From NCBI RefSeq assembly GCF_026571515.1, contig NW_026860185.1, positions 124,001 to 188,000 on the forward strand: a DNA stretch of 64,000 bases, read 5' to 3'. Made by a program: the position numbers and the translations under genes. Under the pieces are notes generated by a model, which saw nothing but the letters and a program-made list of their open reading frames with translations, searched no databases and had not been told where the DNA came from. Source of the stretch: Ruditapes philippinarum. Lineage: Eukaryota. Each line of letters begins with the position of its first letter. The stretch's first letter is position 1. Below, piece by piece: positions 193 to 32,852 of this stretch.

Positions 193-3001
193 TGTTCATA
201 AACGGACAGGTCGGCAAATATGAACAATTCTATAATATCATCTGTTGTAGCTCTACCGGTTCTGTGGTGATCTGAAAGATTAAAATAAATAGATTAAAAG
301 TCCAGTTTGAAAATGTTGATTTAAAGAAATTTTGATCAATTTAAATAATGATTAGAAATATTATTTCACACGCGTCTTAGTGTACAATAAATATTTGTAC
401 TTGTCTTCTGTAAATATATTAAGGTTCATAATGTTTATCTAACGATAGTTAAATGATAAATTTTAAATGTTATAAACTAATATGAAAATGCAATAGGTCA
501 CAGTTTACAGAATATGAAAATAACGCATCATGATGTACAAATAGTTAAGCGATAAAGACTTTAACACAATGCACATGTACTTTTTTGATAATTAAAGAAT
601 TGCCATAAAATTAAAACTTTTGTGGAAAAAATATAAAAAGTCGTTACGAATATGCTTATTGATTATCAAAGTTTGGTATTCATTCGGAATCTACGAACAC
701 AGGTTTGGTAATAAATTTATCGCTTAATTTTAAAAGACAATCTTTTTTACTTGACGGACCTTTATCTTCGTTCAGTTCCCGCTTTACACGATGACTTTTG
801 TGACTTCCGCCTTCAGCATGTATAACCATTCTGTTACTATTATGAGTAAATCTACCATACTACAACAGAAGTACTGCTTGAGATAAGTGATCAACAAGTT
901 TCGAGAAGAATAAGCAATTAAATAAAACGACGAACTATTGTGTAAGAAAACCATAATTTAAAGATAACATTTTTAATCAAAGCACCAGTAAAATGGCGGC
1001 CTACAATGAAATTCGTACTTAAACGTCATTAAAAAAACTAAAGCTACATCAAAATTAGAAGACGTATTACAAATTTTGGGCTGAAGTCCGAAGTCTCTCG
1101 ATGGACAACGAGAACGTCTAAGTTGCCAGATTCGTAAGCTGCAAAGTTCTGAAATAAATAAAATGAAAATGGCTTTAAAAAATGTATATGAAATGAAGAG
1201 CAGCTTCCCGATAATAGAACTATATCTGGTGTTTAAATAAAATAATTCAAATGAATAAATCAACTAATAAATATGGTAATTGTGTGTTGAGTAACACAGC
1301 GAACTAAAACAATAAACAAATTATGATTTGTAACTAATATTCAACACTGCTTTGTGCAGCTCTTGTGAACGTACAAACGCACAATATATATACATTGTAC
1401 ATATTTATTTTTGTTAATATTTTAAAAAGGCTGTTTTTCATTTACATTGTTGATTCACAAAAAGCGATTTGTCTTTCTTTGATTTGGCTTTATTTAAGAC
1501 AGTTTTTCATCAATATACGAGATTTACTAGAAAACAATGTCTTAATGGGTAAAATATTTTCAGGGTAACTAGTTCTTTTACTTTATCTAAGAATAAATAC
1601 AAACGTGATCGCTCAAGGGACACTTATTGCTTTATCTGTTAGTGGCCCATTTCTTTCTACATATAATATTAAAAATCTGGATAAAGAGGTTTGATTTCAT
1701 ACAAATTACGAAAAACCACACACTTGCTCTCCAAACAAAACATGCAAGTATTTAAAATAGAGAAAACAAGAATCCTTAAAGAAAGTCCAAAAGGCAAATT
1801 GAAAATGTTCCAGACTCGGTTTGATTGAACCTGTTCATGGACAATACTGCCAAGTGCAAACTACCGTCCATGCCCCCTAGCACAAGCTTAAGATGAATTC
1901 AACATTTAACCATTTAAAGCCACACAGTTTGTATAACTTGAGAAGAAATCTTCCAATCTTGAAGGAAATGTTGTTAAAGCATCGCTAAACTCATGCGACG
2001 TAAAATTCTTATTTATTATCTCTACTCACATCTCTTTCTTTGTCCTTAAATAGCCCTGAAGGGAGGATTTTCGAGGTGTGAAACAGGTCCTCGCTAAGAA
2101 GTTGAGTTGAAACATCATCCTTTTGTAGAAGCAAGGAAACGTCGTTGTCTTGGAAACTAAACACTACTTCAATTCTAGAGGGAAACTTTCCTCTGCCATG
2201 GAAGTCTACATTTTTTATTGTTATTAAATCTGAAAAAGATCTTTCTTATTTGTATTTTTGCATTCAAGTAAACCAAAAGCCCAGGGCATTTTTACAATAT
2301 ACATTGTAGTTAAATGATCGGCCAAGGGACATAGACTTTATGCTAAAATTAAATTCAAATGCTATTAACTTTACTTCTGTAATTACTAAATACTGTGATG
2401 GCTATTGATAAGAATTATATCATTATAGTTCTAGTTATTTGTTTTAGAAAACAAAAACCCATCTTATATCTGTTTACACGGGGATCAATCAATGTTTGGA
2501 ACAAATCAAAACATAAAACAATAGAAACATGTGTTACAACATAGGTAGTTAAATATCATCTTTTCATAAAATAATAATGACCAGAACTATATTACAAAAT
2601 AAAATTACATACAATGTTACATTTTTTGCTGATACAATTTGTAAAAAAAACTTATTTCTTTAACCCGTAGCCTGGACCTGCTGATTTTGTCTTATGGGTT
2701 TTACCCTGCTTTGAATATTTGGAATTCTAGTTGTCTCTTCAAAATTTATGGAATTTTAAAAACAACAACAAAAAGAAACAAAAAACACAAAAAATTGAGT
2801 TACCAACAATACAGAATCTTGTCAGACTGCACGGGTGAGCAGACTGACACGATTTTTAACTGGTGGCCAAGGATTATCAAATTCTGATCCAGTAGGGTCA
2901 TGGTTAATAAGATTTTACTTACAAGATTCATTTTCAGCCGGAATAAACGCACTGCTTCGCACGAGATAAATTATAACTAATTGAAAGAATAAAGTTTCCA
3001 T
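193..3001 (-). CDS. ADAM/ADAMTS-like (M12B) paralog C, 5' part only (signal peptide, prodomain, start of protease-like domain); continues off the left edge
   Basis: Exons 3001-2923, 2229-2030, 1148-1071, 859-760 and 271-193, all GT-AG with phases matching paralogs A and B. Translation: METLFFQLVIIYLVRSSAFIP.. / ..FPSRIEVVFSFQDNDVSLLLQKD.. / NFAAYESGNLDVLVVHRE.. / YGRF..HRVKRE.. / DIIELFIFADLSVYE. Confidence 0.85.
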
Positions 3002-4054: not shown

Positions 4055-7000
4055 TCAATTCCTGTCAATATCTTTAGGTACCAAATTGACTTGCCACTGA
4101 TCTGCAATATCTTGATATACTTCAGCGGTCACGTCAAGTTCTTCATCCTCCCATCCTCTTTTCTCCACGATAATCGTCTGAGGTCCGGCTATAAATTCCG
4201 CATCACAGCCTTCAGGTACAAACCTTTAACATGTTGGTTCAAATAAAACAATTAATCACAAGTTGGTGTCCAGCTACACATTCCACATTCTGTTAATCGG
4301 GTACACACATTAAAAGATTCAACTAAACCAAAAAAAATTAAAGGTTTCTAATGTCCAGCAAAGAAATCCGTAGCTCAAAAACACTTGCCATAAGGTAAAA
4401 AAGAAGCTTCTTTAGTTTAACGTCAAAATAATTACTTTTTTGTCCTATCAATATATCCTAGCATTTTTTAAAAAAATATTCTTTTCTAAAAATTGTGCAT
4501 TTTAGAAAAATTCATCAATGCCGAATGTACTAAGATTATAAACTTGAAACATCTTATTTTTAAGGAACTGTTCTTGTTTTTAATTGTGAAAGACTTATAA
4601 AATGTATGAAAAAAGTAAATACTTTAGGATCTCAAATACAGAACTGAGTATCATGTCAATTGTCTGGAAATAGGAAGACTAGTATTCTATCTATAATGTT
4701 TTAATATTTACATTGTTTCAATAGTGACTGTATCTTTACAACATTCAGATTCCTCTGTACACGACTCAGTCTCGTTAAACGCCGGAAGACCACCTGGACC
4801 GGAGCAACTTGTACACTTATCGTCACAACCACAACCACCACAACACCCACAACCTGCGTGATAAGCAATTGTCTGATATTTTAATAAGTGTTTTATCAGA
4901 GCAAACTTTGAATTATAGCTTGAAAATAAAATTAAATGCATTGCACAATTCGATAAATACCTTAATTTTCATAAAGTTTCTGACACTAAGTATTTATTTG
5001 TACACGAAAGCGGAAAATGAAATAGAAAATTATATTCAAAGAGAAACGGACATAAAATCAGAACATTTCTAGCAGAAAACACCACTTTTGAGTATTTTCT
5101 TATGATTGAAGGGAGATAACCAAAATATTAAAAAGGGAACTTCTCATTTCATAAGGTAAACGTTTGAAATATATTGGACACTTTTATTACATTATATACG
5201 GTATGTAAAATTGGGCATGTATATATACGAACAAAATAAAATCCTCGAATTTGGTCTCTTAAGATAGATACCTGGTAGATCAAATTCCACAAAGCCCGTC
5301 TTTATTACACAATCGGGGTTCGGTTTTTTCGTAGATGACGCCGGCTGAGTTGTCGTCTGCAATTCTGATTTTGGGGATGACGTAGAAGAAGCTGTTGTTG
5401 GAGATGTTGTCTTTCAGGTGGAAACAAAAAATAATGTTGCTATTAAAATGTCTTAAAAAGGACTGCGTGCACTTTTTCTTACTCTTAAAATGTATCTTAA
5501 CCGAGTCCTTACATTGTGTACCATTGTGATATTTGTTTGAAAGTAAATAGTTTGAAATGAGGCATTTATATACGTTACTTAAATATATTTAATCATACAT
5601 TATATGTATTAATTTTCAAATTTTATCCAGCCAACTCGAAATTTAACAAAATCCATAATTTCAAATACATACTCACCGTGGATGTTGAAGTTGAAGATGC
5701 GTTAGAAGACGAAAAGAATAACATAGCTATTTCAAAATCTGTAGTAGTAGAACTTGTAGTGCTGCTTGTCGAACTCGTCGATGTGGAACTGATATTCAAA
5801 CCAGACGCTGCAAAACTAACAACTGCTGAACATACTCCAAACCTACAAATCGGCTGACAGAAATTTTTTTTTATTGAAACTTCATCGAAGCATCATAAAC
5901 AAAATTTTCAGCAACACAAAAGTTGAACGGTCAAGATTGATGTTATTAATTAATCTGTTACTATTTAAATCTATTAACTTATAACAATCTTATTAAATAT
6001 TTATTTATTTATTTATTTACATTCAAGTAAAGCAATGATAATCTTTATAAAATTCATATTGTTTCAGGCCCGTACGTCATTTATAAACAATGAGTTTGTT
6101 GAAATATCATAATTTTTTTTTGTATGCGTACATTATCCTGACTTCTGCTTGAATCGCATGGTGTAAATTGTGGTACAGTAAACGGTGAACATGTGCCTGA
6201 ATCAGTACATCCTTGCGTTGAGCTGTAACAGTCTACTTTATTTCCTTGACTGCCATCCTGATAGGTAGAAAGAAAGAACGTATAATGTTATGCATCAAAG
6301 GTACACCATACTTAAGGTTTATTTACTCCAAGATTATGAAGCCTTTGACTTAGATTTAAATAAGATAGCTCTATTTATATATTCTATGAAGCTTTTGCGA
6401 CCAGAGTTATTCTACTTGGTGGATAAAAAAGGTAAAATTATTATTGTTCTGATAGTTCCAGCATCAAGAAAAGAAATTTACGATCGACAAACTATTTTAA
6501 AGAACAACAACATTTAATTTTCGAACGATTAATCTTTACATGATACCAAAAGCGAAATTAGAAAGTGTCTGGGAATGTATAATATATCTTTCCACGTACA
6601 CAAAATGTCGATCCAGCTTGATAACGGAGCACACATTGTTCGTTCAATGTAAGGAATTCGCTGATATATGAGGATTCATCAAATGCTTGAAAGTCAAAGG
6701 TGGCGTCCTGTATTTTAAGGCAGCTAAGATCCATCCCTCCGTCACTTTATATAGAAAAGATATGTGTTTGTAAATTACCTTCAAGTTGGGCAAGTTTAAA
6801 TTTTTGTGCTTCACATATAAACTTTTAAAACAAATGAAAAATTACGCTGGTTACTTTTTACAAATGCAGTTTATGCAACAATATACATGTATGACATATT
6901 CCAGTTTGATGGATTTACATCGCTTTCAATTAATTTAAAATGAGATGCTTGACAAAACGTTATTATAAAAGAACTTACAAGGCATTTTTGAAATTGTTAA

Positions 7001-10000
7001 TGCTGCATTCAGAGAACTTCCATCGGTTGCCTTGTTTTGAAGAATGTGTAACTGGGCCATATGCTGGTGACATAATAAACTGATCAATGCTGCTACAATC
7101 GTTACCTTCACCATCAAAGGGGACCGACAAACTAAAATATTGATTGGAACCTTTATATGCCACTAAAGTTTAACTCATGTCGATTGTGGAACAAGCCTAC
7201 ACCATCTACAATGTTTTTGATGAGTGATAAATTGTAAAGAAGTCCTTAGTGTAAATAATTCAGAAACAGAAATAAAGCATGACACCGGTCTTAAAGAAAG
7301 AAAGAAATTTAATGCATTTTGAATCATTTCAAAGTTAATCATAACTATAACATGAACTGTATTATTACTGTAAATAAAGTTTTCATATTTGAAATTCATC
7401 ATTTAAAGTATTTTAGGTACAATTTCAGAGAAACAATAATGTAAGGCCATACGTTAGAGCGATCCCTTGCGCCATTGTGACCGGAAAATTATCAATTCGG
7501 ACTATCGAAGTTGCCAAATCTGTGCGACTACCGCATATTTTTCCAGTCGAAATAACTGTTATGATAAATACAATAATATAATCAATTCTGTTTATTTTTA
7601 TATGAAATGAATGATAAAGAATACACAACAAGATTACAATAAGTTATACAAAGTATATCCATCGGAAATGTACATGCAGCCTAATTGGTGGTGCGGGATA
7701 CATATCAACATAATTATAGAAGTTTGTTTTGCAAAAAGATACATGTAATTTAGAAATTCGCGATATATAATTTTTCAGACAATATCTTTGTATATTTACG
7801 ATTATATTACTCTTCGAACAGAACAGAAAACCAAAACTACAACTACATAATTTTATTGCATTAAAACAACATGTTCCACAGCAATAAGAACAATAAGAAT
7901 ATGGAAAGTGTAAGTTTGGTAAAAATTACGTAGGCCTTTACCTTGCAAATCTCCTTCAATGTTTAATCTGAAAAAAAAAGAAATATATGAAATAAATTAT
8001 ATGTATTCTAAAAGAAAATATTAAAATGTTAGAATTTATAAGGACACTCAAGAATGACAAAGTTGCTATCTATATAAATAATGAATCTTTATATTCATAC
8101 TAACAACCAAAACAATGCGAAGGCATCTTAGTCCTATACTTTTAATTTATTGAAAACCTTCAAGATCATTTTGTCTAGCTAAATGTTGTATGCATACAAA
8201 CAACAATTAAATGTTTTTTATGCCGCCTGTTTCTTTTTAGAAACACATCGTATATATTTTTGTAATCTGAATACGAACTTGTTGCTGGCTTTCTGAAAAA
8301 ATATGGAAAGGACGGGAGAGAAAGACAACTTTTTACTTTGTTATAGCCACCAGATGATCTGTGATCGGAAATGCAAATCTTGTTATGAGTTTGTCGTAAT
8401 ATGACTGAAGATCACTGACGGCTGCAGACTGTAACCTATTGTTAGAAACGTTGTTTTCGACCCATTTCTGTTGATTCGAATGCTGAAGAAATAAACAGAG
8501 CTAACGTGATCAGAAAGACGACAAAAGTAAAATCGAAAAATAAACAAGATTTTCACACATTGTTATGTATGGTAAATGTTTTATATAATAAACTTTTATT
8601 CAATTTTATGAATAAATCGATAAGATCAAAATTATCATTTCCTTACTCTTGTGAAACACTTGCATATACTTCCCCGCTTTTAGTTTATAGTTAGATGTTT
8701 TCCAATGTTTTGAGCCAGATATTTGTGATGAATTTACAAGCAATGAATGTAAAAGCAAACGAATCATGCCATTACATTTATATATCACATACAACAAAAG
8801 CTTGGTCACTGAGTTACTGCTGTAGTTATCGGTCTTGCAGATCTTACATTGATATAAACATGTATGTGTCGATTTAAAACACCCTCTGGTGTAAGTTTTC
8901 TACACATTTAGAATGTACTGTTAGCTATTGTGTCAGGTTTTACTTGAAATTTTGATAAACACCCACTATAGTAGGTAAATCGTTTATGAATATGGTTGAA
9001 TACATAAGTAAAAGTATATAACGTATATAATGACCCGTGTTTATCAGATCTATTTTGAGAAACATAAAAAGATATTGATCAAAATCCCTGCAGGGTGTCA
9101 TTTATTTGTAATGTCCGTAAAACTTGTTAATACATTTAAGGTGTTGATCTTATCGACCATTTATGTCACGATATTCATAATAATATTATATAATATAATA
9201 AATATGTACCTTCCAATGAATCTTACATTTGACTTAAGTGTATAATTCTAATATGAAATATATGAGCCGCGCCATGACAAAACCAACATAATGGAGAATC
9301 CAGATCAGCCTGCGCATCCGCGCAGTTTGATCAGGTTCCATGCTGTTCGCTGTCAGTTTCTCTACTTATTATAGGGTTTGTAAGCGAACAGCATGGATTC
9401 TGATCAGACTGCGCGGATGCGCAGGCTTGTCTGGATCCATGCTGGTCGCAAACGCATTATGTTGGTTTTGTCACAGCGCGGCTCATATGCATATAAATGC
9501 GTTTTACTTTCATGTTTAATTGTAATTTATCAATAAATGACATCATATAGTTTTGATAATATATGAATGTAACAATATGTTGAAAGTGAGTAATATTATT
9601 ATTCGATGTCCGTCATTGTATTGTAATGTATTGTGTAATGTATTGTATTTCTGAGAATGTTGTAATTTTTATTTTGTGTCAGGTCAAGGGCTTATTAGCC
9701 TAAACCAGACTGTTGTTGTTTACATGTGGATTTTGAAATAAAATTCTTCTTCTTATGACCAAGAAATGTGGTAAAATCGGTGTTAAACACAGAAATTCAA
9801 ACAATGGTTCTTTATTAAGTGGCTGGATAAATTGGAACTTGGGTGTGATTAGAAAAAAACAAAAACAAAATTTTTTTTTATAAGTATCTGCAAGTGTTCT
9901 ATCTTTTTATTTGAGATATTCATTTTTGTTTTGTTTTGCATCTTTGTGCTCTTCATTCTTGATATCTTTTAATTATCTTACCGTAATAGTTTGATATTGT

Positions 10001-13000
10001 TGAAGGTATATTCTCATCGTCCTGTTAGTTCCGAAAACACCGAGGTACTGGTAAATTGTGTCAACCTCAAAAGAACATAGATTTAGAAACTGTAAAGATA
10101 TACTATGCTTATACTTGACTAAAATATTTTTTATAACAGAAATTTATTGAAATCTGTGAAAGTCTTACTTAATATGTCTAATTTGAATAAAGGAATGAAT
10201 ACACTATGTATGGGAAGCTGTGTTATCTACTACAGGTCAAGTTGTTCTTATCATAAAGCACTGCCAGTTTTCTAATGCCGCTATATATTTATATTGTGAC
10301 CACCTTTGGTGTGTAAATTTTTAAGCTTTGGGTGAAGTCAAAACATTATTTTATATTAAAAAGAGACTGTATAGCAATTATCAATATTTCCAAATATCAA
10401 ATTTGAGCAGTATAGAAATATATAGTCAATTCATAGTAAGAATGTAGATTAAACATATCTATTGGATTTTAAAATCGTTCAATTACGCTGTCGTAACTAC
10501 GATTAGAATAAAAGTATTTGGAAACTACATGAACATACCCTTATATAGCATTAATTAAAATCAAATTATTTCTGCTAGATACTGGATAAGTTTATTTACG
10601 CATCTTACTTTGTAAATGCTTATGAATATAAAATTATTATTATGTAAAAAAAACTATCTTTGGTGGTAAGAAAATTCTGAAATTTGTATAAATACCTCCT
10701 TTGCTATGGCTTTTAAATAAGTTCTAAGGAACTTCTTTATATCATCTGCTGTTTTGTCTGGCATTAGTTCGTCTCGCACACTGTAAAATGGTTGATGTTA
10801 ATCATTATAAAGTTTTTGACATAACTGTACAGTTAATATTTATTCGAGATTTGTGTATAGTAAGATGTAGGTCTGGACCTTGTGTGTATAATTACACATC
10901 ATTAACCCGCTCTGTTTTTTTTTCAGAATATTAATTTCAACTCGAAAATGAAAAGCGTTCAAACACTTCTATCTAAAATCTACGGAAGAGCAATAGCGGC
11001 AGGTGTGTGTATTTTATTAACTCGAAATTTGGAGTTATTTACTTAAAATTTCGACTAACTAACCCGAAATTTTGACTTATTAACTCGGAATTTCGATTTA
11101 ATACCTCGAAATTGTGACTTAGTAACTCGAAATTTCGACTTAGTAACACGAAATTTCGACTTAGGAACTCGAAATGTCGACTTAGTAACTCGACATGTCG
11201 ACTTAAGAACTCGAAATGTCGACTTAGTAACTCGAAATGTCGACTTAGAAACACGAAATGTCGACTTAGTAACTCGAAAGCAACTTTGGCAATCGCACTC
11301 CCTATTATATCTTTTATTTTCTAAACTCTTAGTAACTGATAACTTTTTCGGCCATTCTAGTAATGTAACTAAGTCGAAATTTCGAGTTACTAAGTAAGCT
11401 TTATTAACTTCTTGCAGATTTATTTAAAATCTTAGATGTAGTAGTTTAGGCTAGATATATCATTTCACAGATTTGAGTAGAGTTGTTGTTGTGTTGATTT
11501 ATCTTAAAATCTGTCTAATAAATCAAGAACTTACTGTTGATAGACAGAGAGATCAGCAAATATAAACAGCTCTAATATGTCGTCGGCGGTATCATTTCTG
11601 TTCTTGTTAATGGCATCTAACGTTATGAAGAGAAAACATATATGAAGAGTTATAGGTGAAATGTATTAGATTTAAGTGAAAACATTAGAGAAGTTGTAAG
11701 AGGCCTATAAAGTTGAAGTGTCTTATATACTTAAGGACAATGAAAACGCACGGCCGGGATAATTGCATTTTAACAAGGAAAATATATTTCTTTTAAATAT
11801 TTTTTCACAGTTTCATAAAACCGAATGCATTTCGGTCATTTAGATACCAAAGTTATGAAAAATGATTGCATTTTAATGAAGTTATTGCATGATAAAGACA
11901 GTACCCGAAAAATCAAAAGTAACACTTTTGGCTAATTGTGATAAGATCACAACAGATAACAGATTTAATCAATTCATGGTTACTTTATGAAATGAAATTA
12001 TTTATTTTTTTTAAACTGTTAATTATTAACCTGTTTTTCACACCTTTCTAGAAATGTTAGACACAAATTAGCAATTAAATTTTTTAATGAAAATGAATAT
12101 TAAACTATGCCAATTGTAATTTTTAGAAATCGTAAAAGCTTACATTGAAAATGCATATACACACTTTTCCTCTATTAAAGGTGCTTAATTTCAAACAATA
12201 CTGAAGATTTGCTAGCAAATTGTATGCAATGGTTCAACAAAGAATTAACGGCTGGGTAGATTTAGGACAGATTCAGCCTGGTCTATCTTACAATCAAATT
12301 TTGTATTATCAAAGCGCAAACCGTTTTGCTGTCCATCGGTCTACAATTTCTCGGCTTCACCAGTTTCACCACTACACTACAGGCCGAATGGCGTCAGATT
12401 CTACAGACGACTATCCGCACCGTAAGGTCTATGAGGCGACGATGTACATCTGTAAGAGACGCTGACGTAGGACATTGTCGTTTCTAAAGATCCCGACGGT
12501 GACATTACGAATATAAATTTATGAGTGATTTTGTTTGGGATTTTCATTTTGGGTTTTGCCTTTGTTAAGTTTGCATTACTATGATGAAAAAGTGTGATTT
12601 TGGGATTTTCACCAAAGGTTTTTCGATTTACTGGTGTACATTTGATTTTAAACATTTTGAATTATTTTCAGCTGTTAAGTTTGCTTTTTGTATTGAAGTT
12701 ATGATATATATCTAATGGAGTCGTTAGTGTTTTGTTTTCATGTAATTAGATGCATATAGTGCGGGCGTGCGTTTTCATTGTCCTTAAGTATATTACTTAT
12801 GATAATTATTTGATAATGTAATATTTCTAAATTAAAAAATCTTATCATGTTTCTATTTAGTTTTTTGAAACACGATTCATTCAGAATACAGTGTTTTTCA
12901 GGTATTCTGATACATTTCGAATATATAAAACATTTAAATACATATTATTTGTCGCATTTTCTTCATGTCTGTATATAAAGATTTTCTTATTTATTTGATC

Positions 13001-19243: not shown

Positions 19244-19528
19244 GTTGTTGTATTGATCATAAAAGTTCACTGAACGTACATATGCTAATAAGACTTTAGT
19301 TAATTGAATAGATAAAATTATACTTACGTTGTTGTAACTCGGACTTTCTTGCCAAAACAATGAGCACCTTGCTCACAATCCTTGTTGTTCTTATCACAAC
19401 CTGCACACGTACATCCTGTAATATATATAATTATAATTCGGTATGTTAAATCAGAACTAAATAATTGTCAACATCTGTCACGTTTGTACATAGTACTGAA
19501 GTCCGATCCATTGAGGCAACGGTCAACG

Positions 19529-21082: not shown

Positions 21083-21114
<32 letters not shown>

Positions 21115-24100
21115 GGCGAGTAGGATAGCTCCCCTTTTCATAGAAAAGTCGAGCTAAAAAGTTGACGCTCATATTATCTAAAGTGTATTAATAAAATTAA
21201 TGAAATAATAAATCAGATGAATAATTAATACAATTATATACGAGGGGAAGTCAGAAAATATCCGGACTTTTGACTCGTTCTCGAAAACCATTCAACATTT
21301 TAAAAAAAAATCTTTCTACTCTTTCTCCACCTACGTCTACGCACCTTTGCCATCTTCGTGGGAGCTTTTGTATTCCCGCTGTGAACCATGACTTTGGGTA
21401 GTGTGTACAGCAGATATCAAAGCCGCCCTGGTCTTATATTTCTTTCCAGCATGCAATTTTTTCAGTTCTGGAAACAAATAAACGTCACAGGGGGGCGAGG
21501 TCTGGGCTATAAGGAGGGTGAGACAACAATTGCCATTTGTAAGAGTTGATAACCTCCACTGTAGCTGCGTCGGTATGGGAGGGGGCGTTATCGTGAAGAA
21601 GGAGGACATTTTTATGTGCTAACCTGGGACGCATTTGCTTCAGCTTTTCTCTGAGATTTTTCAGAATTACCTCTGAGATTTTTCAGAATTACAATTTGTA
21701 CTTCAGAATAGTACTTGGCGGCGACAGTTTGACCTTTTGGCATGAAATGAGTAAGTATCATTCCTCGTGAATCCCAAAAGGCAACAAGCATGACTTTGCC
21801 AGATAAAGGAGACAGCTTAAATTTTTAGGAGGTGGGGAACCAGCTCGTTTCCACAACTGAGCTTTTGTCTCAGGTTCGGAATAATGACTCCAGTGATAAT
21901 GCGGTTCAAAAACTTATCTCCTTCACGATTAAAACGACTTAAATGTTCTTTTGCATTGGTTACTCTGGTTACCGTTTGATCTGCGGACAGCTGTCTAGGC
22001 ACCCACCTGGCACTTACCTTGATCATGCCTAGGTGTTCGTGTAAAATATTGTGTGCTGATGCCTTACCGATGCTAAACTTGTTTGCTACCTCCTCCAAAG
22101 TTACTCGACGATTTTGTTGACAAAAGCTTTAACATTTGCTACCATTGTTGGGGTCACCGCCTCAGCTGGCCGCCAGTCCTAGGCCTGTAACAAGTACTTG
22201 TTCTTCCTTCACGAAACTGAGAAACCCAGTTGTAGAAGGTTGAACGTGATGCTCATTTATCAGAAAATCTTTTTAAGCCTCTGAAATATGTGGCAGGGCT
22301 TTTCACCTTCTGCAACCAGAAACTTTATTAAAGAGCATTGTTCCTCTAACAAAGAGTCCATGATAGACGAAACACCTATCATATATCACAGGGCAAAATA
22401 CTGTGTATACACAACTATCATTGAAAATAAACTGACCACGTTATTGGCGAATGAATGTAGTTTTCACCAATATATAATGTGTGTATATAGCTGCACGTAG
22501 AAAGAGAGGAGCATGAAAAGTCCGGATATTTTCTGACCGTCCCTCGTATAACGCTGTCTGTCTTACCCCCTTTGTATTCCCACATGATGTCCTATGTGAC
22601 ACAGTAAATGGTTCACACACACCATTGACTAGGCAGCCCTGTGTTGCACTGTAGCAATCAACCATATTTTGATTGCTATTATCCTAGAAATATAACACTT
22701 CAATGCGCATGTGTAATAATTAAAGACACATGCGCACTGTAAATAAAATCATTATAATAAATTCATCATATTTAACAGTGTGTTCAAACTTGGTTTCTGT
22801 TTTGACAACAAATTTGAAACTTCTTCAAAATTTATCGGTCCAATGAGCATTAGAGGAATACTTGTATATACATATATTGGTACAACCGGTACCGTCGGCC
22901 TAGTGGTTAAGGCGTCAGCCTTCGGATTGTGAGGTCGAAGGTCCGAGACCCACGTGGAGCGTTAATTGAGGAATTAATGTTTCTCGTCGAACTCATTCTG
23001 AAATGGCCGCTTCGTGAGCAGCAAGGTAGTTAAAATGAATGTTTACCATTTTCTATCCGCCTGGCGCCTGGCATAGTGGTAGCAGTTGGGGTAAAAGGTA
23101 TACAAGCAAAAGGTGTCTTATAAGTCAGAAATGGCTGGCCCTTTCAGTAGGGGAGACACTATAATAAACAAACCCTTTACCCTTTTTCCTTTTATATTCT
23201 TAAATATTTACAGTTTTATATTAGTTTTAAATAAGAATTAAAAACCTGTAGAAAGAACGGTTTAATAAAACATTATATTCAAAATATTACATACGCAAAA
23301 TGTAGCCCCACTTTGGTAACGTATTTCGCATTGTTGATCAGCAGATATTTCTTCACTCATAAAAGGGGCATTGTTAAACTTTTCCCAGTCGTAATACTTA
23401 TCCTCTGTTTGAAGACAACTTAGGTCTAATCCGCCATTACTTTAAAAATAAAAATGCTAAAATCGTAACAGAAAAGTACCTTAAATATTCATAAATAATG
23501 TATCTATGATTTACGAACAGTAAATGTATGCTAGATTATTAGCATAGTTTCCGTGTGTTTATTATTAATGAATTGTTTCAGTAAAAGTTTACATACATGT
23601 AGAACAAATTAGATTTTGAAATCCAGCACAACCTTTACTTAAATATCTTACCTATATAAAGATGTTTCATTTAAAACCTTATATTTATTTTAAACAATAT
23701 GGTCAAGGGAACTTTATTTTTGCTAAAACTAAATATTTTTGTCTTATTAATAAAAAAATTTGATAGATGCTAAATATTTATGCGGATCGCTTCCATTCTT
23801 TCGACCACAGATTAAATTGCAGCAAATATTTAGTTTTGGTCGCACACTTGTGTATAATTTGGCTTGAAAAGATTAATCAGTTATGAAACTATTGTGTCAG
23901 TACCAAACCATTGAAATAGCAAATCTAATTTTTTTTTTTTTTTTCATATTTGGCTAAAACACCTTCAACATTATTTAAATTTCAAACGAATCAACTTTTA
24001 ATCGGTAAATAAAACAAATTGACATATTTGGCCATGAAGTAAATAACTAACGTAACGTAACAATCCAAGAATTCGACTTTTTTCATTATACGTACATCGC

Positions 24101-27100
24101 AGCTTGGAACTTTTCTACGCTACATGTTGAGAATAACCATCTGTTCCCTTGTATTGATGGGTCTGTCACAACACTATAATCACTGGACATGATGTATTGA
24201 TCATTAATTTCACAACTGTTTGATGAACCATCGAAATTTACCCCGAATCTTAACCAAAAAACAAAAGATGTCTGTTATGCAACCAAAGTTTTATTTCCCA
24301 TCGTATATTTCTCAATATCATTTAACTTTATTTTTACAATAAAAGATTTCACTGTCTATATTCGCGAGAATGTGAAAGTCTTAGCTGCCATATACTTATT
24401 CGTTTGTTTCAGTTTGAATTACTTTAAGATTTCTTGCCATGTTGCTCGTCTTGGCAATATATTGCTCAGCTTCGGTGTTGCTATTGCACAGCTCCTGCGA
24501 TAGTTTCACATTCCTGCGTTATGGATATACACAGTGGGTATACCATTTTTCTGCACAAGAATATCTGTAAACTGTTTTTCAGAATAAAAAAGAGTAGCAC
24601 GATGGTCTCAGCCGTATATTCTTTTCTGGCTTTAACATTACGCCTATAGTTTAAGATGTATGTAAAAAAAGAAACGTCAGTTTTATATCTAGGGAGAATA
24701 ATTACTATGGCTGTTGTATCTTACTGAAATACGTAAATGTACAGTATATCTATTAGTTCGATAAATGTGTTTGTGGTTTCGCCTGAGGTTTCTCGTCGGG
24801 ATCTGCTAATGAATTGATTTTTAACATGATTATTTGTCTGCGGTTAGCGAGGTTATATATTTGCTATTACTGTGTCATATAAACTTTACTGACACTTTTG
24901 ACAGGTTAATTTGGCTTTCGTTTGTAACTTTGATATTAATGTAACATTATAACTTAGATTTCATTTGTGACATAATCTTTTTTTTCCGTCTGATAATATG
25001 TCCTGGATGTCGTTTATGACATGAAAAGTTCGACTGCTGTAATATGATAACATCTATCTATCTATCTCTGGATACTGCCAACCCCTCTTACGAGTGTTAA
25101 AGGCAGGAATTTAGTGCACGTCGGATTGTTAGTAAAAGGTAAAAAGAAAAGCTAAAAAAGAAAAGTCCAAACATTGACATGCTTGGAAGGCGAGACTGAA
25201 AATGTATTCTAGTCATGGTTAAAATGTTAATAGTGAAACAAGATGATAAGAGATAAAATAGTTTAAAAACACTGGGAGTAAGACTAGTACTGCAAACCCA
25301 CCACTGCCTGTTTGAACTGACTCAGGTTAGGCAGGGTGGCAATGTTACTAGGAAGTTTATTCCATAGTATAATGCTATGAGGGAAGAAAGAGTACTTATG
25401 GTAGTCAGAGGATACCTGTAATTGGCGTAGAGATAAGGGATGCATATGTCTGGTTAATCTATGTGGGGTTTGAACATAAGTTGGGAGATTAATTGCAACT
25501 AGGTTGTGGTATATCTTAAAACATTATCAGTCTACAGTCCAATCTGCGATGTTCAAGGGGTCGCCAGCCCAGTTCTTCCTGCATGGCTGTGACACTAGAG
25601 TGAGGGGAGTAATCCCTTTTAACCCATCTTATTGCGCGTCTCTGGATCATCTCAACTTTGTCAATATTGGTTTTAGTGTAAGGAGACCAAATAGTTGAGG
25701 CATATTCAACCTGTGGGCGGACCAGGGACTTGTATGCTAGTTCTTTCACTTTCTCATTTTTTAGTAATGACATTTCTTTTAATAAAGCCAAGGGATCTGT
25801 TTGCATTGGAAGTTATTCGAGATATATGTGTATTGAATTTAAGGTCAGCAGATAGATCTAGTCCGAGATATTTAGCATTTGTAACAGACTCTAGGACTTG
25901 GCCATGGAGCATATATTTGTGTTTAATTATGGTTTTATTTTTGGTGATAATGACAATATTTTCTGGACATAATAATAAGTTAATCATTACCTTTGTTATC
26001 AAATGTATCATTATATATCATGCATCGTCATGATAACATATAAGACATATTTACTTTTTCAAAATTTAGTAATGTGTAAGTAAAATTGGTTACGTCCGAG
26101 CTATCGCTTGAGACATGGCAACTTGAAAGTGGTCAATACGAACAATAGATGCCGCCACATTTGCTGTCTCCCCACACATGCTGCCAGCTGTCATTACTAT
26201 ATTGTATAAAATAGTTAATTAGAGCTAGTTTGTCAATTCTATAAGGATCATAAGCCTATGGGGCAATACATACAAAGCTTATAAATCCACACATAAAAAT
26301 GATCATGAAAAGATAGTACGTACAATTGAGTATAACATAATTTATACTAAGTTTATGTACTTCGGAAGGCTGAAACTCAAATTTAACCAAAGAAAAATAT
26401 ATAAAAGAAAAACACTTCAAAATAAACATATGAATGACTTGAAAACGTGCATTTGTACCCCAAATTACAGGCGATCTTTATTGCAATCAGTACAAAAATG
26501 TCAACTTACTACATGTAGCTATAACCTTAGTGCACGAATTCTCTGACAATTATTGTTAATAAACAACAGAACAGAATGTGTAGTTATAAAACTGTATGGG
26601 GAGAATTGCTATTGACGATATTTAGTCCTACTCACACATTCATAAAATTTAACGACATAGATTATTAAAAATATGCTTGAAGTAAATAAAAGTATTAAAT
26701 ACATGTTGGCATGTTGTGGAAGCGTAAGTTTGGCAAAAGTTTGATATGTGTAAATCATAAAGATTTTACCTTGGTCTCCGTCTGCCATTTGTAACCTAAA
26801 AACAGTTCATTATTTAATTTGATTAATTTATTTATGGTAAAATGATTATAAAATTGTACTGCTTAAGTTACATTAAATAAATATGTAAAAAATATTTTGC
26901 AGTCGGCCTAAAAACCAAGCATTATACAGTTTCATTAACCTTTTTAACAGAATTGTTGTAAATTTCATCAAACATTGTTCATAAATTAGGATTATAAACG
27001 GAAAACCCCACGGTAACACTAAAGTTCGTATACGAATTTTAACATGCAAATGAAGACTATAATCAGTTCGTGTATGTGCTACGTCACGGTGTTATAGTTG

Positions 27101-30100
27101 CTATACAGAACACAGCAAATATGAGATTTTCACGTGCAAACACACTTTAACCGTTTTAGTTTCACGGTACACTTGTAATCATCTGATAAAAATATTAAAT
27201 TTCTATGAAAACATCCGTTACAATGCGGAAATATACCGTTATATTAGGACTGCTACTTATCGCCATGTTTGTTGATTTAATATTGATGTACGGGCGGAGT
27301 TTCTTATGCAAATAGAAATTGTACTTCCGATTTCGCCACAATGAGGTCGCATATATGTATGCTTATAAAACGCAATTTGGTTGTCTTGACACCATAATAA
27401 AGATCTGGAGTCGATATGAATCCCAATGTATTAATGAAATGTCTCTATTTCTGTTTGAATGAAATTTATTTAATGTAGCTTTAAATAAGCCTGGCTTATT
27501 TGTGTGTGCATATTTGTCTGCGTATTTGTTCCGAAGCGTTAAGACGTCATTTATGAGCATGGAGTTACTTGAGATAAACAACCTCAAACTAAAATTATTA
27601 ATTTCTTAAATAACTCTCATTTTGGGAGTTGTCATATTTTTTTTTTTTTTTTTGATACTAACATTTTCTAGAACATCAATTCTGTAGACTATATCTTTTT
27701 TATGATGACAGCATCTCGTTTTGTTATCATGTAGTTTTGTAGTTTTCAAAATAAAAGTATCAAAATTCTGACGTAAGGCTCATTTCAAATCAGATTTTGA
27801 AGACAAATAAGAGAAGAAACGTTAGGATTGCCTCTAAAGCACATAAATACTATAATTACCTTAGTCAAAGCTGCTTAACTCTTCTCTAACAAAAAAATAG
27901 TTAAGTTTTGAGATTTTATCCAGTATATTTTTAAATTGAACTGTTCTACTCACTTTGTTAAAGCCATCACGTGATCAGCGTAAGGAAAAGCGAATTTTGT
28001 ATACAGTTTGTTGTAATATGCCTGGAAATCGGTAACAGCTGATGATTGTAATTCATCTCCAGACATATTATCCTCTACCCATTTCTGTTGCTTCGAATTC
28101 TGTGAATGTATTACAAATGTTATTTATAGTAAACGATTTTTTGTGCGTGTTGTTTGACTGACCCGTATGTTTTCTTCTTCCCCTTTTAAAGACAAGTAAT
28201 GGCGTATTATGTTGGAACACAATTTTAATTAATAAAATGACTTAGAGAGCGTCTTTTGCACCATTATTTAAGGTGATCATTGCACTGGAATTTATACTGT
28301 CAGGACTACAGGAAGAAGTTGAATAAATAACATATCAAGAACTATGTGACACTCAAATTCATAACAATCTTCTGACATGTAGCTATCATGGCATTATACA
28401 CATCCTCGTGCCTTTTCTCATAATGGCGTTAGCAACCAAGTATTCACCTCTAAACAACCTAGATCGTGATAAATAATGTGCCCAGTTAGCTCAAGAGTTG
28501 ACCATTGGACTGTGAATCGGGGATTACGGTGCAGGTCAATTTCATTGTGATTGATTATGATATCCATTCTATGGTCATTTGCACTGTACCTCTGATCTGG
28601 TATGTACAAAAATTATCAATTTCTTGCGAAAATGAAGGCAGCTTTTACTAGTAAACTGCTTGACAGCCTGCACAGGAACGATGCGTGCGGTGGCTGAAAT
28701 GTGCTGTAAATTCAATGTGGCTTAATGCCTACCACTATAAATAATTTCAAAATATAATGCACTTACAGTAATGATTTGGTATTGTTGAAAGTACACTCTC
28801 AACGGCATGCTCGTTCCATATTCACCTAAATTTTCAAAGATAGCATCCACCTGGAGAAAAAACATTTTATATTATAAGCTTCAAATATATCGATTTGATA
28901 AACACTTGACAAGTATATGTGATTTTATGTAAAATATGACAATGAACTGTACTGTTTACGCCAATAAACTATTCTGTCTGTCTGTCGTATGAAAAGAATA
29001 TTCGATTTGTTTATGTTAATGACTGTACTTAACTTACTGTAGTAGATGTAGTAGTGATAATAATAATAATAATAATAATATCTTTATTCAAACAAGGTAT
29101 TAACATACGAAGACATACCATCGTAGAAAACAAATAACATATCTTAATTTTAAAATTAATGCGGCCTTCTAAACAATATATAGGAACACACACACAATAC
29201 ATCATAAAACAATAACAAGTATTCCATAAGATTCGGTCATATAACATTTTTGACAAATGCTAGTGCTTTATAAGTTCTAGCAGTAAATTTTAATACATAA
29301 ATGTTTTAGCTTTTGTATACACATTTTACCTAATATATTTCAAACTATTTCTAATTCCCACCATACATGTTTTATGTACAAGTATCTAAAACTCCACTGA
29401 GGTTTAAAAGACTATAAACATAACATTTGAATTTCTTACATAAATGAGCTGGGGCACTTTAAACAGACATATATGCAAAGATAGTTAATAAATATGCTTT
29501 GAAATAAATTGAAAATCGTATTTTTATGCTTGTCTTAGCCTGATTTGAGTGAAAAGCGTTTAAACGCATTTCTTTTTGGGTGATTTTTTTCACAATTGGA
29601 AAAATTATTCTGGAAAAAACAACGTGCGCGAATGATCTGAAATTTTGCACAAAGATTAGTGGTCTTAACCTACATCAAATGGTACATTTATCTGGAAAAA
29701 ATATTTTCAGTCCCACCATGTCAAGAAACCTCAGTAGAGTCCCTTTAATGTGTATATTTCATGAAATATATACAAAAACAAACAACTTTCAAAATATACC
29801 GATTTTCTTTTAATACAACTAAACAAAACGAAAATCAATATTATGAAAGATACTACGTGTCTGAAATGATAGCTTTCTATTGAATATATAATTTACATAA
29901 AAGGAGGAACAGACATGAAACTAGAAATGTCACTGTTAAATTGCATTGATCTAGTACCTGTGTTTGTCTCTCGTAGACTTTACTAGAAACGATCATCTTT
30001 CACCTTATGATATCCCGTGCAAGTATAATTTAGTCAAAAACCAATTTTGTTTCAAGATCCTGATAAAATTATTCTATTATACTAATATTTTTTTCTTTCG

Positions 30101-30671
30101 AAAACATAAGTCTAAGTATTATTCTGTATAAAAATGTAATTTGAAATTAATACATACTTCTTTGACAACGCATGGTAGCCACTTTTTGATGTAGGGATAC
30201 ACTTTCGATGAGGCCATCATCTCGTTTTCAAAACTAGAAAAACAAAATAAATGAAAGAAGTCCCGAAAGAAGGAGAATATAAATGTATTTATATGCACAT
30301 GCCTGTAACAATATGCAACTGATCTCAAAAGAAAATCTTCTAGAATTATAAATATAGGAAAGTATTTCAAAGACGGACATTGGCTAATTTTTGTTTCGTT
30401 ATTTCTTAAATACATGTACAGTTTGTTTTTACTTATATAGGCGATTAAACATTTATAAACAAACAAACAAACAAATGAAAAGACATGATTTCAGTATGTT
30501 TTAGAACACTTACTGTTGATGAACAGATAAGTCCGTAAACAAAAATAACTCTATGACGTCATTTGGAGTCGATACATCTCGGCGAACTCTGTGCTTTACT
30601 TAGAAGATAGAAAGTGCAAAAAATGAGAATAATAGAAAATAGAAACAAACAATTATCAATGTATTCCTTTG

Positions 30672-30705: not shown

Positions 30706-32852
30706 GACTTTATTTAACGAGAGAACTCATTTGAATAAACATATCAATCTTCCATGAGGCCCTCATATGAACGGGTATGGTTAATTCATGATACTGCAGC
30801 ATAGTTCAAACAGCTATGCTTGCTTTTATACTGTAATGCTGCAACTCTGTGCAGAACTTATATAGCTGTTGTATAACTATCAAATGTATATCTTTTTTCG
30901 TTTGATAAAAATCATAATTTCATTGCTAACCGAAGTAAAAATTACTCAATGAGTGAAGAAGACGTCCCATAAATTAAGGGATAGGGTTGTTCTAGAAAAA
31001 TCTTAGAGTCGGTTATGCTATTTTTTTAGTTTGTCTGTTTAAGACATGGCAGAGTTCATTATTTCTAATGCCCCCAGCACCGGTTTATCTAGTCAATCTA
31101 GTCACAAACATACCATATATTTCTTCTGGTCTGACGCTGTGATTCGTGTGACTTCCATCTACCGACTGAATCACCATGTTTCTATTGTCTTGTTTAAATC
31201 TTCCGTACTGTAGATATATTGCCGGAGTGAGATTAAATTCTTATTACACATACATTTACATGAAAAAGTATTTAATTAAAAATTAATGTCATTGAACTTA
31301 TACAATAGATAGCAAAGAACTGTTAAAGGAAACACATAATATATACATTTGTAGATTTGCTTCGCAAACAATGTCAAAATAATGACAGATCTGGATTAAT
31401 GCTTTCAGCCAACAACTCATCTTAACTAAAACAATGAATTTCTAGATATGGGACGTTCAGTAAATAATTCTGTCTCATCTAAAGTCAGAGCTAATATCAT
31501 TATTCGATTGTTCAGTTACGATAAAACAAACGCTATGAATACTTTTGATTATGTACGTTGTATCATTTTGTCGATAAACATAAATCATAACTTACAAACT
31601 TTGGTTGTGCATTTTCAGTTTCACGATGAACAATCAAAACATTAGAATCGCCGGAATCATAAGCTGCAAACTCCTGTGGTGAGAAAATCTTGTTTATTTT
31701 TTATTGATAAATACGGTGTCCCGTTAGTACCATGGCGACACACACATTACTCAAAACAACGAAAACAGGAAATAAGGAACAAAATAACAAAACCACGATA
31801 GTGTAAAGTTGAAGGGACGATGATGAAAAGTTTTAAAAGGAAACAGAATGATTATGATTTCCTTTTAGATCTTACATGCAGCAACTTTAATTATCTATAC
31901 AGCTGTATATACTAAAGTACTAAAATTTAAAATGCGGACAATAATTATATTTCTTAGCTTACTTTACTTTTCCTTTGTGTGAACACGTCAGACGGAAGGA
32001 AACTTGAGGCATCAAACACTGATTGTGTTAGAAGACCAGTTGTTTCGTCATCCTTGTCTAGTCTCAAATAAATGTCCTTGTTATCGTAACTTAGCAACAA
32101 CTCTATCACTTTCGGAAACTGTCCGTAACCGTCATACTCAACATTCTCTATTGTCACTTTGACTGTTTTAAATACATATATATATATATGAATGATGAAC
32201 AAAAAAAACAAGATGACAAATTTATAGGATTCAACAATGATAAGCATTAATTAATTTATTCTTATAGTTTGATATATTTCTAAGATTGATCATTTGCTTA
32301 CAATTTTTGAATACTAGTATCTATATTTAGCACTACTTTACATGAAAATCTGGAAACAAAGTGATCCCTCGGAAGCATTAATCACAACAAAATTACTTGA
32401 AAATTGCAGACTCGGTTTTATCAAGTCTGTACATGAGGGACAATGAATAAGTGTAACAACCCTCACGCCCCCTAGCACCGGCTTGAGTGGTACTCAATTC
32501 TCAACAGTTAATAGTGCTGGCATCAATGATCCCGAAGGACCAGAAAAATATAACAACACACGGGGCAACTTTTTACAGCTGCCACACAGCACTTGAAGAC
32601 GAATTATTTTGTTACAATTTAGTAATCTGCATGTCATGCAAATGGTTTGTTAACGGACCATCAGGAATCACCCCTTTAAAGGTAAAGTAATTATAATATA
32701 AAGCAGAAGAACAATATCTGAGTTACCTCTAAATTTCTTATACAAATAAAACAGTAGATAACAAAATAATGCTTTAACTTACAATCTGCCGACACAAAGA
32801 TCCAATTTGAAACTAAAACAAACAGTACGCATGATCTAAGACACTCAACCAT
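18876..32852 (-). CDS. Secreted ADAM/ADAMTS-like (M12B reprolysin) pseudoprotease paralog B, 16 exons, about 581 aa
   Basis: Exons 32852-32783, 32162-31963, 31673-31596, 31207-31114, 30598-30514, 30233-30158, 28850-28767, 28099-27954, 26795-26770, 26196-26094, 24248-24096, 23439-23295, 22683-22567, 19890-19761, 19415-19328 and 19026-18876. All GT-AG, 1746 nt in frame to TAA, same phases as A and many identical exon lengths (70, 200, 78, 84, 146, 26, 103, 153, 145). Signal peptide [26 protein letters not shown] furin site, Met-turn YIMSS. Confidence 0.88.
19189..19613. repeat. Trinucleotide microsatellites (ATT)n and (AAT)n(GAT)n on either side of the Cys-rich exon of paralog B
   Basis: Directly visible near 19189-19243 and 19529-19613. 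Confidence 0.95.
20209..21160 (-). mobile_element. HINE-type element (TTTTTAGCTCGACT family)
   Basis: Minus-strand 5' TTTTTAGCTCGACT, (GGCGTC)n microsatellite, internal tandem repeats, and 3' AGTCGAGCGCGCTGTC..GACAGCTCTTGTT hairpin end. The same ends recur at 46769-47316. Confidence 0.75.
21241..22546 (-). mobile_element. Full-length but defective mariner transposon
   Basis: TA-flanked TIRs of about 30 bp (CGAGGG..GTCAGAAAATATCCGGACTTT). Transposase motifs [19 protein letters not shown] and YSPDLAP/CDVYLF are spread over several frames by frameshifts and deletions; 22-bp internal tandem duplication near 21648-21691. Confidence 0.92.
22886..23173 (+). mobile_element. tRNA-derived SINE
   Basis: A-box-like GGCCTAGTGGTTAAGG and B-box-like GGTCCGAGACCC, followed by a non-tRNA body and an A-rich tail (ATAATAAACAAACC). 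Confidence 0.65.
25051..25932 (-). mobile_element. 5'-truncated LINE (CR1/L2-group) 3' end
   Basis: [28 protein letters not shown], then after a frameshift [28 protein letters not shown]; a 3' UTR ending in an (AGAT)n tail. Confidence 0.85.
28480..28735 (+). mobile_element. Degenerate tRNA-derived SINE (Meta-domain-like)
   Basis: Shares TTGCGAAA..GACAG(C/A)CTGCACAGGAACGATGCG..GGTGGCTGAA with the minus-strand copy at 42610-42835; tRNA-like head AGTTAGCTCAAG..GGACTGTGAA. Confidence 0.5.

Follow-up and report, generated by a model that had tools for sequence, protein, structure and literature searches.

We analyzed a 64,000-nucleotide (nt) stretch of the genome of the clam Ruditapes philippinarum (contig NW_026860185.1, positions 124,001 to 188,000; hereafter the window), the first half of which carries a tandem family of genes for predicted secreted, metalloproteinase-like proteins. 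The window is AT-rich animal DNA (GC 0.27-0.38). An all-against-all comparison of its open reading frames yielded three collinear series of similar pieces, representing three head-to-tail paralogs on the minus strand, which we refer to as genes A, B and C. This confirms the initial annotation, which had been made from the sequence alone and proposed at least three such paralogs. Gene A exon 5 ends at position 193, and the ATG of gene C lies at position 32852. Exon borders were derived from reading frames, paralog alignment and splice signals.

The whole coding span of gene B (4055..15358, minus strand) comprises 17 exons of 70, 200, 78, 97, 82, 85, 84, 146, 26, 103, 153, 145, 126, 177, 139, 142 and 169 nt, together 2022 nt including the stop (673 codons plus TGA). 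All of its introns are GT..AG, and the phases are consistent throughout. Gene C (LOC132759157; 18876..32852, minus strand) has 16 exons of 70, 200, 78, 94, 85, 76, 84, 146, 26, 103, 153, 145, 117, 130, 88 and 151 nt (1746 nt, 581 codons plus stop). Exons 1 to 8 lie at 32783-32852, 31963-32162, 31596-31673, 31114-31207, 30514-30598, 30158-30233, 28767-28850 and 27954-28099, and the remaining ones at 26770-26795, 26094-26196, 24096-24248, 23295-23439, 22567-22683, 19761-19890, 19328-19415 and 18876-19026. The C exon numbers follow those of B, with the single C exon 14 corresponding to B exons 14 and 15 together. Gene A (LOC132759166; 193..3001 in the window, minus strand) is represented by exons 1 to 5, at 2923-3001, 2030-2229, 1071-1148, 760-859 and 193-271 (79, 200, 78, 100 and 79 nt), and its remainder lies to the left of the window.

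Every exon phase is common to B and C, and 9 of the 16 C exons have the same length as in B (70, 200, 78, 84, 146, 26, 103, 153 and 145 nt); exons of 200 and 78 nt are also present in A. Amino acid identity over ungapped exons is 0.61 between A and B, 0.52 between B and C and 0.50 between A and C. BLASTN of the B region against the C region gave alignments limited to exons 3 and 8 and one 70-nt repeat; therefore, the introns of B and C are not alignable. The shared phases, the many equal exon lengths and the unalignable introns described in the initial annotation thus hold for B and C. Over 251-299 ungapped codons, the proportion of synonymous differences (pS) was 0.70-0.83, i.e., saturated, and that of nonsynonymous differences (pN) 0.24-0.32. 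The Nei-Gojobori ratio of nonsynonymous to synonymous substitution (dN/dS) was 0.136 for A-B and 0.145 for B-C (pS 0.70-0.72 for these pairs) and is undefined for A-C, where pS exceeds 0.75. These ratios are rough given the saturation, yet far below 1, and indicate purifying selection. The family had been described as old and maintained: the saturated synonymous sites, together with database fragments 82% identical to C exon 2 and 70% identical to A exon 2, support its age, and a dN/dS of about 0.14 supports its maintenance.

To the splicing of gene B we can add contigs assembled from two small runs, X1 and X3, with reads examined over 3701-9200. These contigs (depth 33-69) skip eight gene B introns, with joints at 4851>5270, 5410>5677, 5853>6132, 6256>6599, 6744>6979, 7134>7456, 7555>7942 and 7967>8337, and a single contig of 1480 nt contains all of B exons 8 to 16. 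Seven of the eight joints were reported with CT..AC ends, which correspond to GT..AG on the minus strand. The remaining one, 7134>7456, was reported as AA..TT. A non-canonical intron at this place was considered and rejected: a 3-nt shift turns the ends into GT..AG with length and frame unchanged, and we take the joint as GT..AG because the shifted border matches the C exon 10-11 boundary used by RefSeq. One codon (S or T) is uncertain at this joint in B. A search of the whole assembly with exon 8 returned three places, namely B, C and, on another contig, an exon with 43% identity. No intron-less copy of exon 8 was found in the whole assembly, and therefore the X1 and X3 contigs are best read as spliced RNA. 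We conclude that spliced transcripts of gene B exist, as a check of the proposed junctions by RNA required. In addition, reads of a further run, X21, cover the last B exon at a depth of 4.5. About 20 exonic differences are listed between the 2015 RNA contigs and the window (3701-9200), presumably allelic between individuals.

Two of the three genes are already known in RefSeq, as uncharacterized proteins only. Protein P0018 (XP_060606863.1, LOC132759157) corresponds to gene C and protein P0001 (XP_060606872.1, LOC132759166) to gene A; both are named "uncharacterized protein [Ruditapes philippinarum]". Starting at the first Met of exon 4 and ending with exon 17, the gene C peptides tile P0018 residues 1-455 (13 of 13, with gaps of 0 or 1 residue at split codons), and all five exon peptides of A exons 1-5 tile P0001 in order. 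The annotation pipeline has thus reached the same junctions as our exon models for A and C. Gene B was analyzed exon by exon, while full-length work used four public proteins: P0018, P0001, P0014, a 603-amino-acid (aa) full-length relative from a transcript contig, and P0010 (XP_052766397.1), a 272-aa protein of Mya arenaria. A full-text literature search, which covers papers outside their supplementary tables, found no paper naming the accession or LOC numbers of the family, and literature searches on Ruditapes/ADAMTS/inactive and on bivalve/reprolysin/mantle returned nothing on it. Orthology to an already characterized family was not found either, the only named relatives being "uncharacterized protein" entries.

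The proteins are predicted to run from a signal peptide through a Cys-free pro-like module, a dibasic site, a dead reprolysin fold, a disintegrin-like Cys module and a serine/threonine-rich (S/T) linker to a C-terminal module. Exon 1, which in B (15289..15358) holds the ATG and a signal-like peptide with a KD19 hydrophobicity of 1.91, is hydrophobic in the family (KD19 1.78-1.91). After exon 1, no 19-residue hydrophobic window of at least 1.6 occurs in B or P0018, and only the first beta-strand of P0014 reaches 1.6 outside this exon. A signal peptide is therefore probable, whereas a membrane anchor appears unlikely, in agreement with the soluble nature that had been proposed for the proteins. 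Exons 2-4 (in B at 14194..14393, 13641..13718 and 13160..13256) encode about 130 residues with zero cysteine, and hence no cysteine switch. This N-terminal module has no Pfam match and, judged from its position, would be the prodomain. It ends in a dibasic R-x-K/R-R site in six of six sequences: HHVRRD in B (exon 4), HRVKRE in A, HRVRRD in C (KHRVRRD in exon 5, 30514..30598), SRRRRD in P0014, HRVRRD in the Mya protein and HRVRRE in a copy on contig C1132. The site is of the furin type.

In gene B, the reprolysin-like domain begins in exon 5 (11535..11616), where the strand ILELFIFADLSVY aligns with IELFLIVDHSMY of the snake-venom enzyme acutolysin-C. Exons 6 (10696..10780), 7 (9982..10065; a loose RNA-contig end at 8483 continues into it), 8 (8337..8482) and 9 (7942..7967) follow, the last being a micro-exon of 26 nt in C as well; exons 8 and 9 are both present in the RNA contigs. 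We built a family profile (A4) from P0014, P0018, P0001 and P0010, with exon pieces of B and A as separate rows, and compared it with the PDB sequences. Six hits were obtained at E up to 10, and the best three are all snake-venom metalloproteinases (leucurolysin-A 4q1l, E 0.045; BmooMPalpha-I 3gbo, E 0.1; acutolysin-C 1qua, E 1.3). The alignment is in register at MAHELGHNLGMxHDG, with "vaMAqaiaitlGvplDG...yiMS...FSsCS" of the family opposite "VTMAHELGHNLGMRHDG...CIMA...FSDCS" of the snake-venom enzymes.

Ordinary reprolysin exons with HELxHGLxxxHD are present in the same genome, where they reach 30.0 and 28.8 bits with Pfam Reprolysin (cut-off 20.8). Against three of these bona fide clam exons, the family profile was aligned by hhalign over 72 columns (probability 95.6%, E 1.3e-8). 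When B exon 11 was compared with a canonical clam reprolysin exon by BLASTP, identity was 39% (E 4e-9), and tblastn with a canonical clam exon reached exon 11 in each of the three paralogs (E about 1e-5 to 1e-4). Further, the ESM Atlas contains P0018 letter for letter, with a model of predicted template modeling score (pTM) 0.65. Residues 25-250 of P0018 scored 0.95 by Atlas features against reprolysin clusters, and the ten best named hits all belong to the reprolysin clan. By Atlas structure, the same residues matched the MIG-17 cluster with a template modeling score (TM) of 0.85 over 213 residues, both sides being predicted models, followed by adt-1 (0.77), vertebrate ADAMTS (0.76) and ADAM22 and ADAM23 (0.73). 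We count the Atlas feature and structure results as one source. The profile matches, the hhalign result and the Atlas comparison support the non-canonical metzincin fold of the initial annotation, and they argue that the middle domain is a true M12B (reprolysin/adamalysin) homolog. Elsewhere in the genome, at C10050:1141462-1141710, a reprolysin match of 24.3 bits lies within an 810-aa stop-free frame, which is unusual for an intron-rich genome and may represent an intron-less metalloprotease gene.

The active site of this domain has lost its catalytic residues. Aligned with HExxHxxGxxHD, the motif reads QGIALTLSVPFD in B, QGIALTFNVPLD in A, QAIARTFGVNFD in C and AAIGITLGLQLD in P0014. None of these four sequences retains a single zinc histidine of the three, or the catalytic glutamate; the positions read QGIAL..F in B, QGIAL..L in A, QAIAR..F in C and AAIGI..L in P0014. 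In gene B, exon 10 (7453..7555), supported by RNA contigs and the alignment, carries the helix TMAQGIAL in place of HExxH, and exon 11 (6979..7131) has FDG in place of HD and retains the Met-turn (IMS) and FSxCS. The corresponding parts of C are AMSQAIAR in exon 10 (26094..26196) and FDG, the Met-turn and FSTCS in exon 11 (24096..24248). What remains is the aspartate that follows the third zinc position, together with the Met-turn and the FSxCS helix; the Met-turn reads (F/Y/V)(I/V)MS in four of four sequences, aligned with CIM of the snake-venom enzymes, and the dead helix is conserved as M-A/S-x-G/A-I-A/G, again in four of four. No HExxH-bearing family copy was seen in the family stretches on contigs C1132, C18 and C3013, where exons 10-11 went undetected altogether. 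According to Table 2 of the 2024 review of M12 pseudopeptidases (PMC11266112), the Met-turn is preserved in dead M12 ADAMs, and their first histidine is often replaced by Q; the clam family shows the same pattern as the dead ADAMs in that table. From these substitutions, the proteins would be unable to bind a catalytic zinc or to hydrolyze peptides.

The putative disintegrin-like Cys module is encoded by exons 12-14, with its first half in B exon 12 (6600..6744), its second half in exon 13 (6132..6257) and its end (CRFGVC) in exon 14 (5677..5853). ADAMTS_CR_2 was the best Pfam match on P0018 (profile positions 4-68 of 69, E 0.022), and in Atlas structure rows 1-3, P0018 residues 251-348 are aligned with ADAMTS clusters carrying ADAMTS_CR_2. 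B exon 14 then passes into the S/T linker, which is 51% S+T in this exon and much shorter in C. The C-terminal module of about 100 residues consists of the end of exon 15 (5272..5410), which leads from the linker into the first strand, the Cys-rich exon 16 (4712..4853) and exon 17 (4055..4223, including TGA). Its proposed beta frame follows the pattern CVxxTGFVEFDLPG ... KVRVTT-FVPxGC ... AEVYQ ... WxVxLV, with a variable Cys-rich knob on an exon of its own (exon 16, 10 cysteines in B and 5 in C). The module has no Pfam match. An Atlas search of P0018 residues 251-455 returned nothing by features, and residues 355-455 had no structure match above TM 0.30.

Modules typical of ADAM and ADAMTS proteins were not detected. 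P0014 and P0018 have no Pfam match to TSP_1, to ADAMTS_spacer1 or the ADAMTS Cys-rich region, in whose place the S/T linker stands, or to the ADAM disintegrin, ADAM Cys-rich and EGF modules. A W..W or CSxTCG pattern is absent from P0014, P0018, P0010 and the B exons, and PLAC was not matched in P0014 (E up to 1) or P0018 (E up to 10). Pfam, the motif scan and hydrophobicity agree with the absence of a TSP1 repeat and of a transmembrane helix that had been noticed at first sight.

Relatives of the family occur outside the cluster. When an exon 2 profile built on the three paralogs was run against a set of 1.84 billion representatives, 17 proteins scored at E <=0.001; 15 of these were taken as relatives, P0017 provisionally. 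Two candidates, P0011 and P0016, were rejected as bacterial-looking repeat proteins. Exon-2-like sequence, 40-82% identical to A, B or C, is present in 12 further database sequences (11 short fragments and P0014). None of them matches A, B, C or the C1132 copy exactly, and therefore other assemblies hold orthologs or paralogs. Within the 1.4-Gb assembly, further family exons lie on contigs C1132, C18 and C3013, where some copies consist of exons 16-17 alone. The Mya arenaria protein P0010 has the N-terminal module fused directly to the C-terminal Cys-knob module, and contains nothing like the protease or disintegrin parts; this may be a genuine short form, or exons may have been skipped in the annotation. 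Mya arenaria and Ruditapes both belong to Neoheterodontei, and the family may be lineage-specific, as suggested in the initial annotation.

We propose that A, B and C encode secreted, catalytically dead M12B members of the ADAMTS/MIG-17 type, which serve as binding or scaffolding pseudoproteases in extracellular matrix or mucus, and we consider this reading likely. The proteins would be secreted and then cleaved at the dibasic site by a furin-type convertase. The S/T linker, presumably O-glycosylated, would form a stalk presenting the Cys-rich C-terminal binding module, which we picture as a beta-rich frame into which a Cys-rich knob is inserted. Surfaces for interaction would be offered by the dead cleft and by the disintegrin-like and C-terminal modules, and the proteins might compete with active clam reprolysins for substrates or inhibitors. 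Known M12 pseudopeptidases are reported to act via protein-protein contacts (PMC11266112). Judged from the lost catalytic residues, the clam proteins probably bind rather than cut.

Several results weigh against this proposal. The runs that show splicing, X1 and X3, are labeled only "RNA?", and the certain RNA run X21 has no listed joints and covers introns at low depth. Three protein searches that should have admitted the length of gene B returned only P0014 and/or P0018 and no protein matching gene B among database proteins; these searches scored only word-sharing candidates of 0.55-1.75 times the query length and have little bearing on rarity. Gene B may be unannotated in RefSeq. Pfam gathering cut-offs were never reached by any family sequence tested. 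Among 20 B and C exon pieces, Pfam returned only Reprolysin_2 (E 0.011 for B exon 11 and 0.046 for C exon 11; 14-16 bits against a cut-off of 27). It found no family in P0014 at E up to 1, nothing relevant in P0001 and P0010 and no reprolysin model in P0018 at E up to 10, and the ADAMTS_CR_2 match on P0018 amounts to 15.6 bits where 27.3 would be needed. The 14 places listed for PF01421 in a scan of the whole genome all lie outside the window, and phmmer of P0014 against the PDB found no metalloproteinase, only chance matches to T-cell receptors. Two AlphaFold models of our own were poor (mean predicted local distance difference test (pLDDT) 48.9 and 49.2), built from shallow alignments of 25 and 21 rows that were mostly exon fragments, and Foldseek and VIA searches with both returned nothing at E <=0.001 or Z >=5. 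We regard these failed fold searches as uninformative rather than as evidence against the fold; the poor models still show secondary structure in the strand/helix order of adamalysin. Because our own models were poor, the fold evidence is taken from the Atlas's own model.

A bolder version of the proposal, which we put forward only tentatively, gives the unmatched parts the leading role. The C-terminal residues (about 100) would be an undescribed extracellular domain that, with the N-terminal module, forms the working part of a heterodont-clam-specific family. The dead protease, derived from ADAMTS, would have been recruited as an arm that traps substrates or inhibitors and regulates the active reprolysins of the clam in mucus, shell matrix or immunity, which would make this the first ADAMTS-type pseudoprotease family.

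It might also be argued that the N-terminal pro-like and C-terminal Cys-knob modules are the working unit and that the dead protease and disintegrin-like domains are dispensable or removed, the latter as in some sperm ADAM pseudopeptidases. The Mya protein, in which the two modules are coupled directly, fits this idea, as do the stand-alone exon 16-17 copies on C1132, C18 and C3013 and the conservation of the C-terminal module, the best conserved part between B and P0014 (55% identity in the exon 16 row and 61% in the exon 17 row). Some ADAM pseudopeptidases are reported to discard their pseudopeptidase domains (PMC11266112). However, the protease-like exons are under the same purifying selection, and the dead helix is conserved in all four sequences; moreover, the Mya protein may be an annotation with skipped exons, and several of the stand-alone C-terminal copies carry stops. 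We consider this explanation rather unlikely.

Decay of the cluster into transcribed pseudogenes without protein function would be suggested foremost by gene A. Its later exons lie to the left of the window at C8672:117172-123855 (30 kb to the left were examined), where exons 6, 7, 9-13, 16 and 17 are open. Exon 8, in contrast, is decayed (C8672:122183-123272), with several indels relative to B and C, in-frame stops and no matching donor site, while the exons beyond it stay open. The RefSeq product of gene A has 243 aa and ends after exon 7 by read-through into the intron; skipping exon 8 would shift the frame, since this exon measures 146 nt. We therefore regard gene A as either truncated or a young pseudogene. 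In-frame stops are also found in some outlying copies (a TAA in exon 17 at C18:28636-28788, and on C1132 near 46.5 kb), and the databases searched held no gene B protein. On the other hand, all 17 exons of B and 16 exons of C are open with consistent phases and canonical splice sites, dN/dS is about 0.14 despite the saturated synonymous sites, B is spliced at a contig depth of 33-69, and exon 2 fragments with 70-82% identity, which are not the A, B, C or C1132 copies, are still open. The family had been described as intact; this holds for B and C but not for A, and decay of the cluster as a whole appears improbable to us.

Two further explanations are very hard to maintain. Enzymatic activity via a non-canonical catalytic arrangement could appeal to the conservation of the helix forming the cleft, the Met-turn and the aspartate following the third zinc position, but the four catalytic positions (Q/A, G/A, L/R/I and F/L) offer no metal ligand or general base in any of the four sequences, and the paralogs differ in their substitutions, which speaks against the fixation of a new set of catalytic residues. 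Chance resemblance of an unrelated domain, for which the missing above-cut-off Pfam match and the failure of our AlphaFold models to match a metalloprotease in the PDB might speak, is scarcely compatible with the hhalign result (95.6%, E 1.3e-8), three top PDB profile matches from one family and in register, a TM of 0.85 over 213 residues, ten best named feature hits from one clan and the recovery of exon 11 of all three paralogs by the canonical clam exon (E of about 1e-5 to 1e-4).

Among known systems, MIG-17 of Caenorhabditis elegans resembles the proposed pseudoproteases most. It is secreted and combines a pro-domain, a reprolysin domain and an ADAMTS disintegrin-like domain, and the MIG-17 cluster, the best structural match to P0018, has members of about 510 aa with Reprolysin and ADAMTS_CR_2. 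MIG-17 is not known to carry TSP1 repeats, and the premise of the initial annotation that ADAMTS proteins always carry TSP1 was thus too strict. For the same reason, the claim of a novel architecture was overstated with regard to a secreted protein without TSP1, whereas the combination of the dead site with the linker and the C-terminal module is new. MIG-17 is reported to work through catalytic activity (PMC11232982) and to end in a PLAC domain (PMC6215420). The clam proteins differ from it in lacking the catalytic residues and a PLAC match and in possessing the S/T linker and the unmatched C-terminal module.

With the dead ADAMs (ADAM2, 7, 11, 18, 22, 23, 29 and 32, and unc-71; PMC11266112), the clam proteins share substituted zinc and base residues and a kept Met-turn. 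ADAMs span the membrane once and carry disintegrin, ADAM Cys-rich and EGF modules, whereas the clam proteins have no membrane helix and a Cys module that resembles that of ADAMTS. Canonical ADAMTS proteins share with them, as predicted for the clam proteins, a signal peptide, a pro-region with a furin-type site, a reprolysin domain, an ADAMTS_CR_2-like domain and secretion; the clam proteins lack the central TSP1 repeat, the Cys-rich/spacer region and the active site. ADAMTSL proteins and papilin are non-catalytic secreted ADAMTS relatives that work in the matrix. In these, the protease domain is absent and TSP1 and spacer modules are present, while the clam family shows the reverse, with the protease-like domain kept and TSP1 absent.

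The closest sequence relatives that we found for the active-site/Met-turn region are active reprolysins of the clam itself (e.g., at C8329:46621-46845 and C7742:153454-153663; 33-39% identity). They share the NIMSP/W.FS.CSV..FK pattern with the dead family but keep HELxHGLxxxHD, and their exon is uninterrupted where the dead family has the exon 10-11 intron. No family-like downstream exons were found within 8.6 kb beside an active clam reprolysin gene.

What is new is that an ADAMTS-type chassis is combined with a site that is fully dead yet conserved, with a mucin-like linker and with a C-terminal module for which no match was found. The M12 pseudoproteases described so far are found among the membrane-bound ADAMs, and no ADAMTS-type pseudopeptidase is included in the available part of the 2024 review (PMC11266112), so that with the clam family the concept would reach the secreted ADAMTS/MIG-17 branch as well. 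Its paralogs, with their conserved dead cleft, form a natural series for studying a metzincin fold that does not cut. Moreover, the family draws attention to a conserved module of about 100 residues without a recognizable relative and to RefSeq "uncharacterized proteins" that are blank in Pfam, and it provides candidates for clam biology with respect to aquaculture, shell, mucus and immunity.

Further features were observed in the window. A second tandem pair of multi-exon genes lies on the plus strand at 43631-48953 and 57984-63809, with Pfam matches to AMP-binding enzymes (E 1.6e-15 to 3.5e-5) and exon pieces that are 49-75% identical between the copies. Intron 13 of gene C contains a remnant of a Tc1/mariner-type transposase in several frames (21340-22128, minus strand; DDE_3, E 6.7e-6; HTH_Tnp_Tc3_2, E 0.0011). 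In intron 10 of the same gene, two overlapping open frames of 87-98 aa (25519-26017, minus strand) have no significant Pfam match and resemble what we take to be the tail of a non-LTR retrotransposon protein. Diverged tandem repeat blocks, seen as mutually similar open frames, are located between B and C (16426-17755) and in C intron 13 (20410-21187). A partly self-complementary repeat of some 300 bp, with open frames on either strand, occurs at 9226-9533 in a B intron and at 40675-40994 and 45819-46102 in the right half of the window. Finally, B intron 5 harbors a short tandem repeat (11042-11423) with SRHFE(L/F)L units on the minus strand, the plus strand being open as well.

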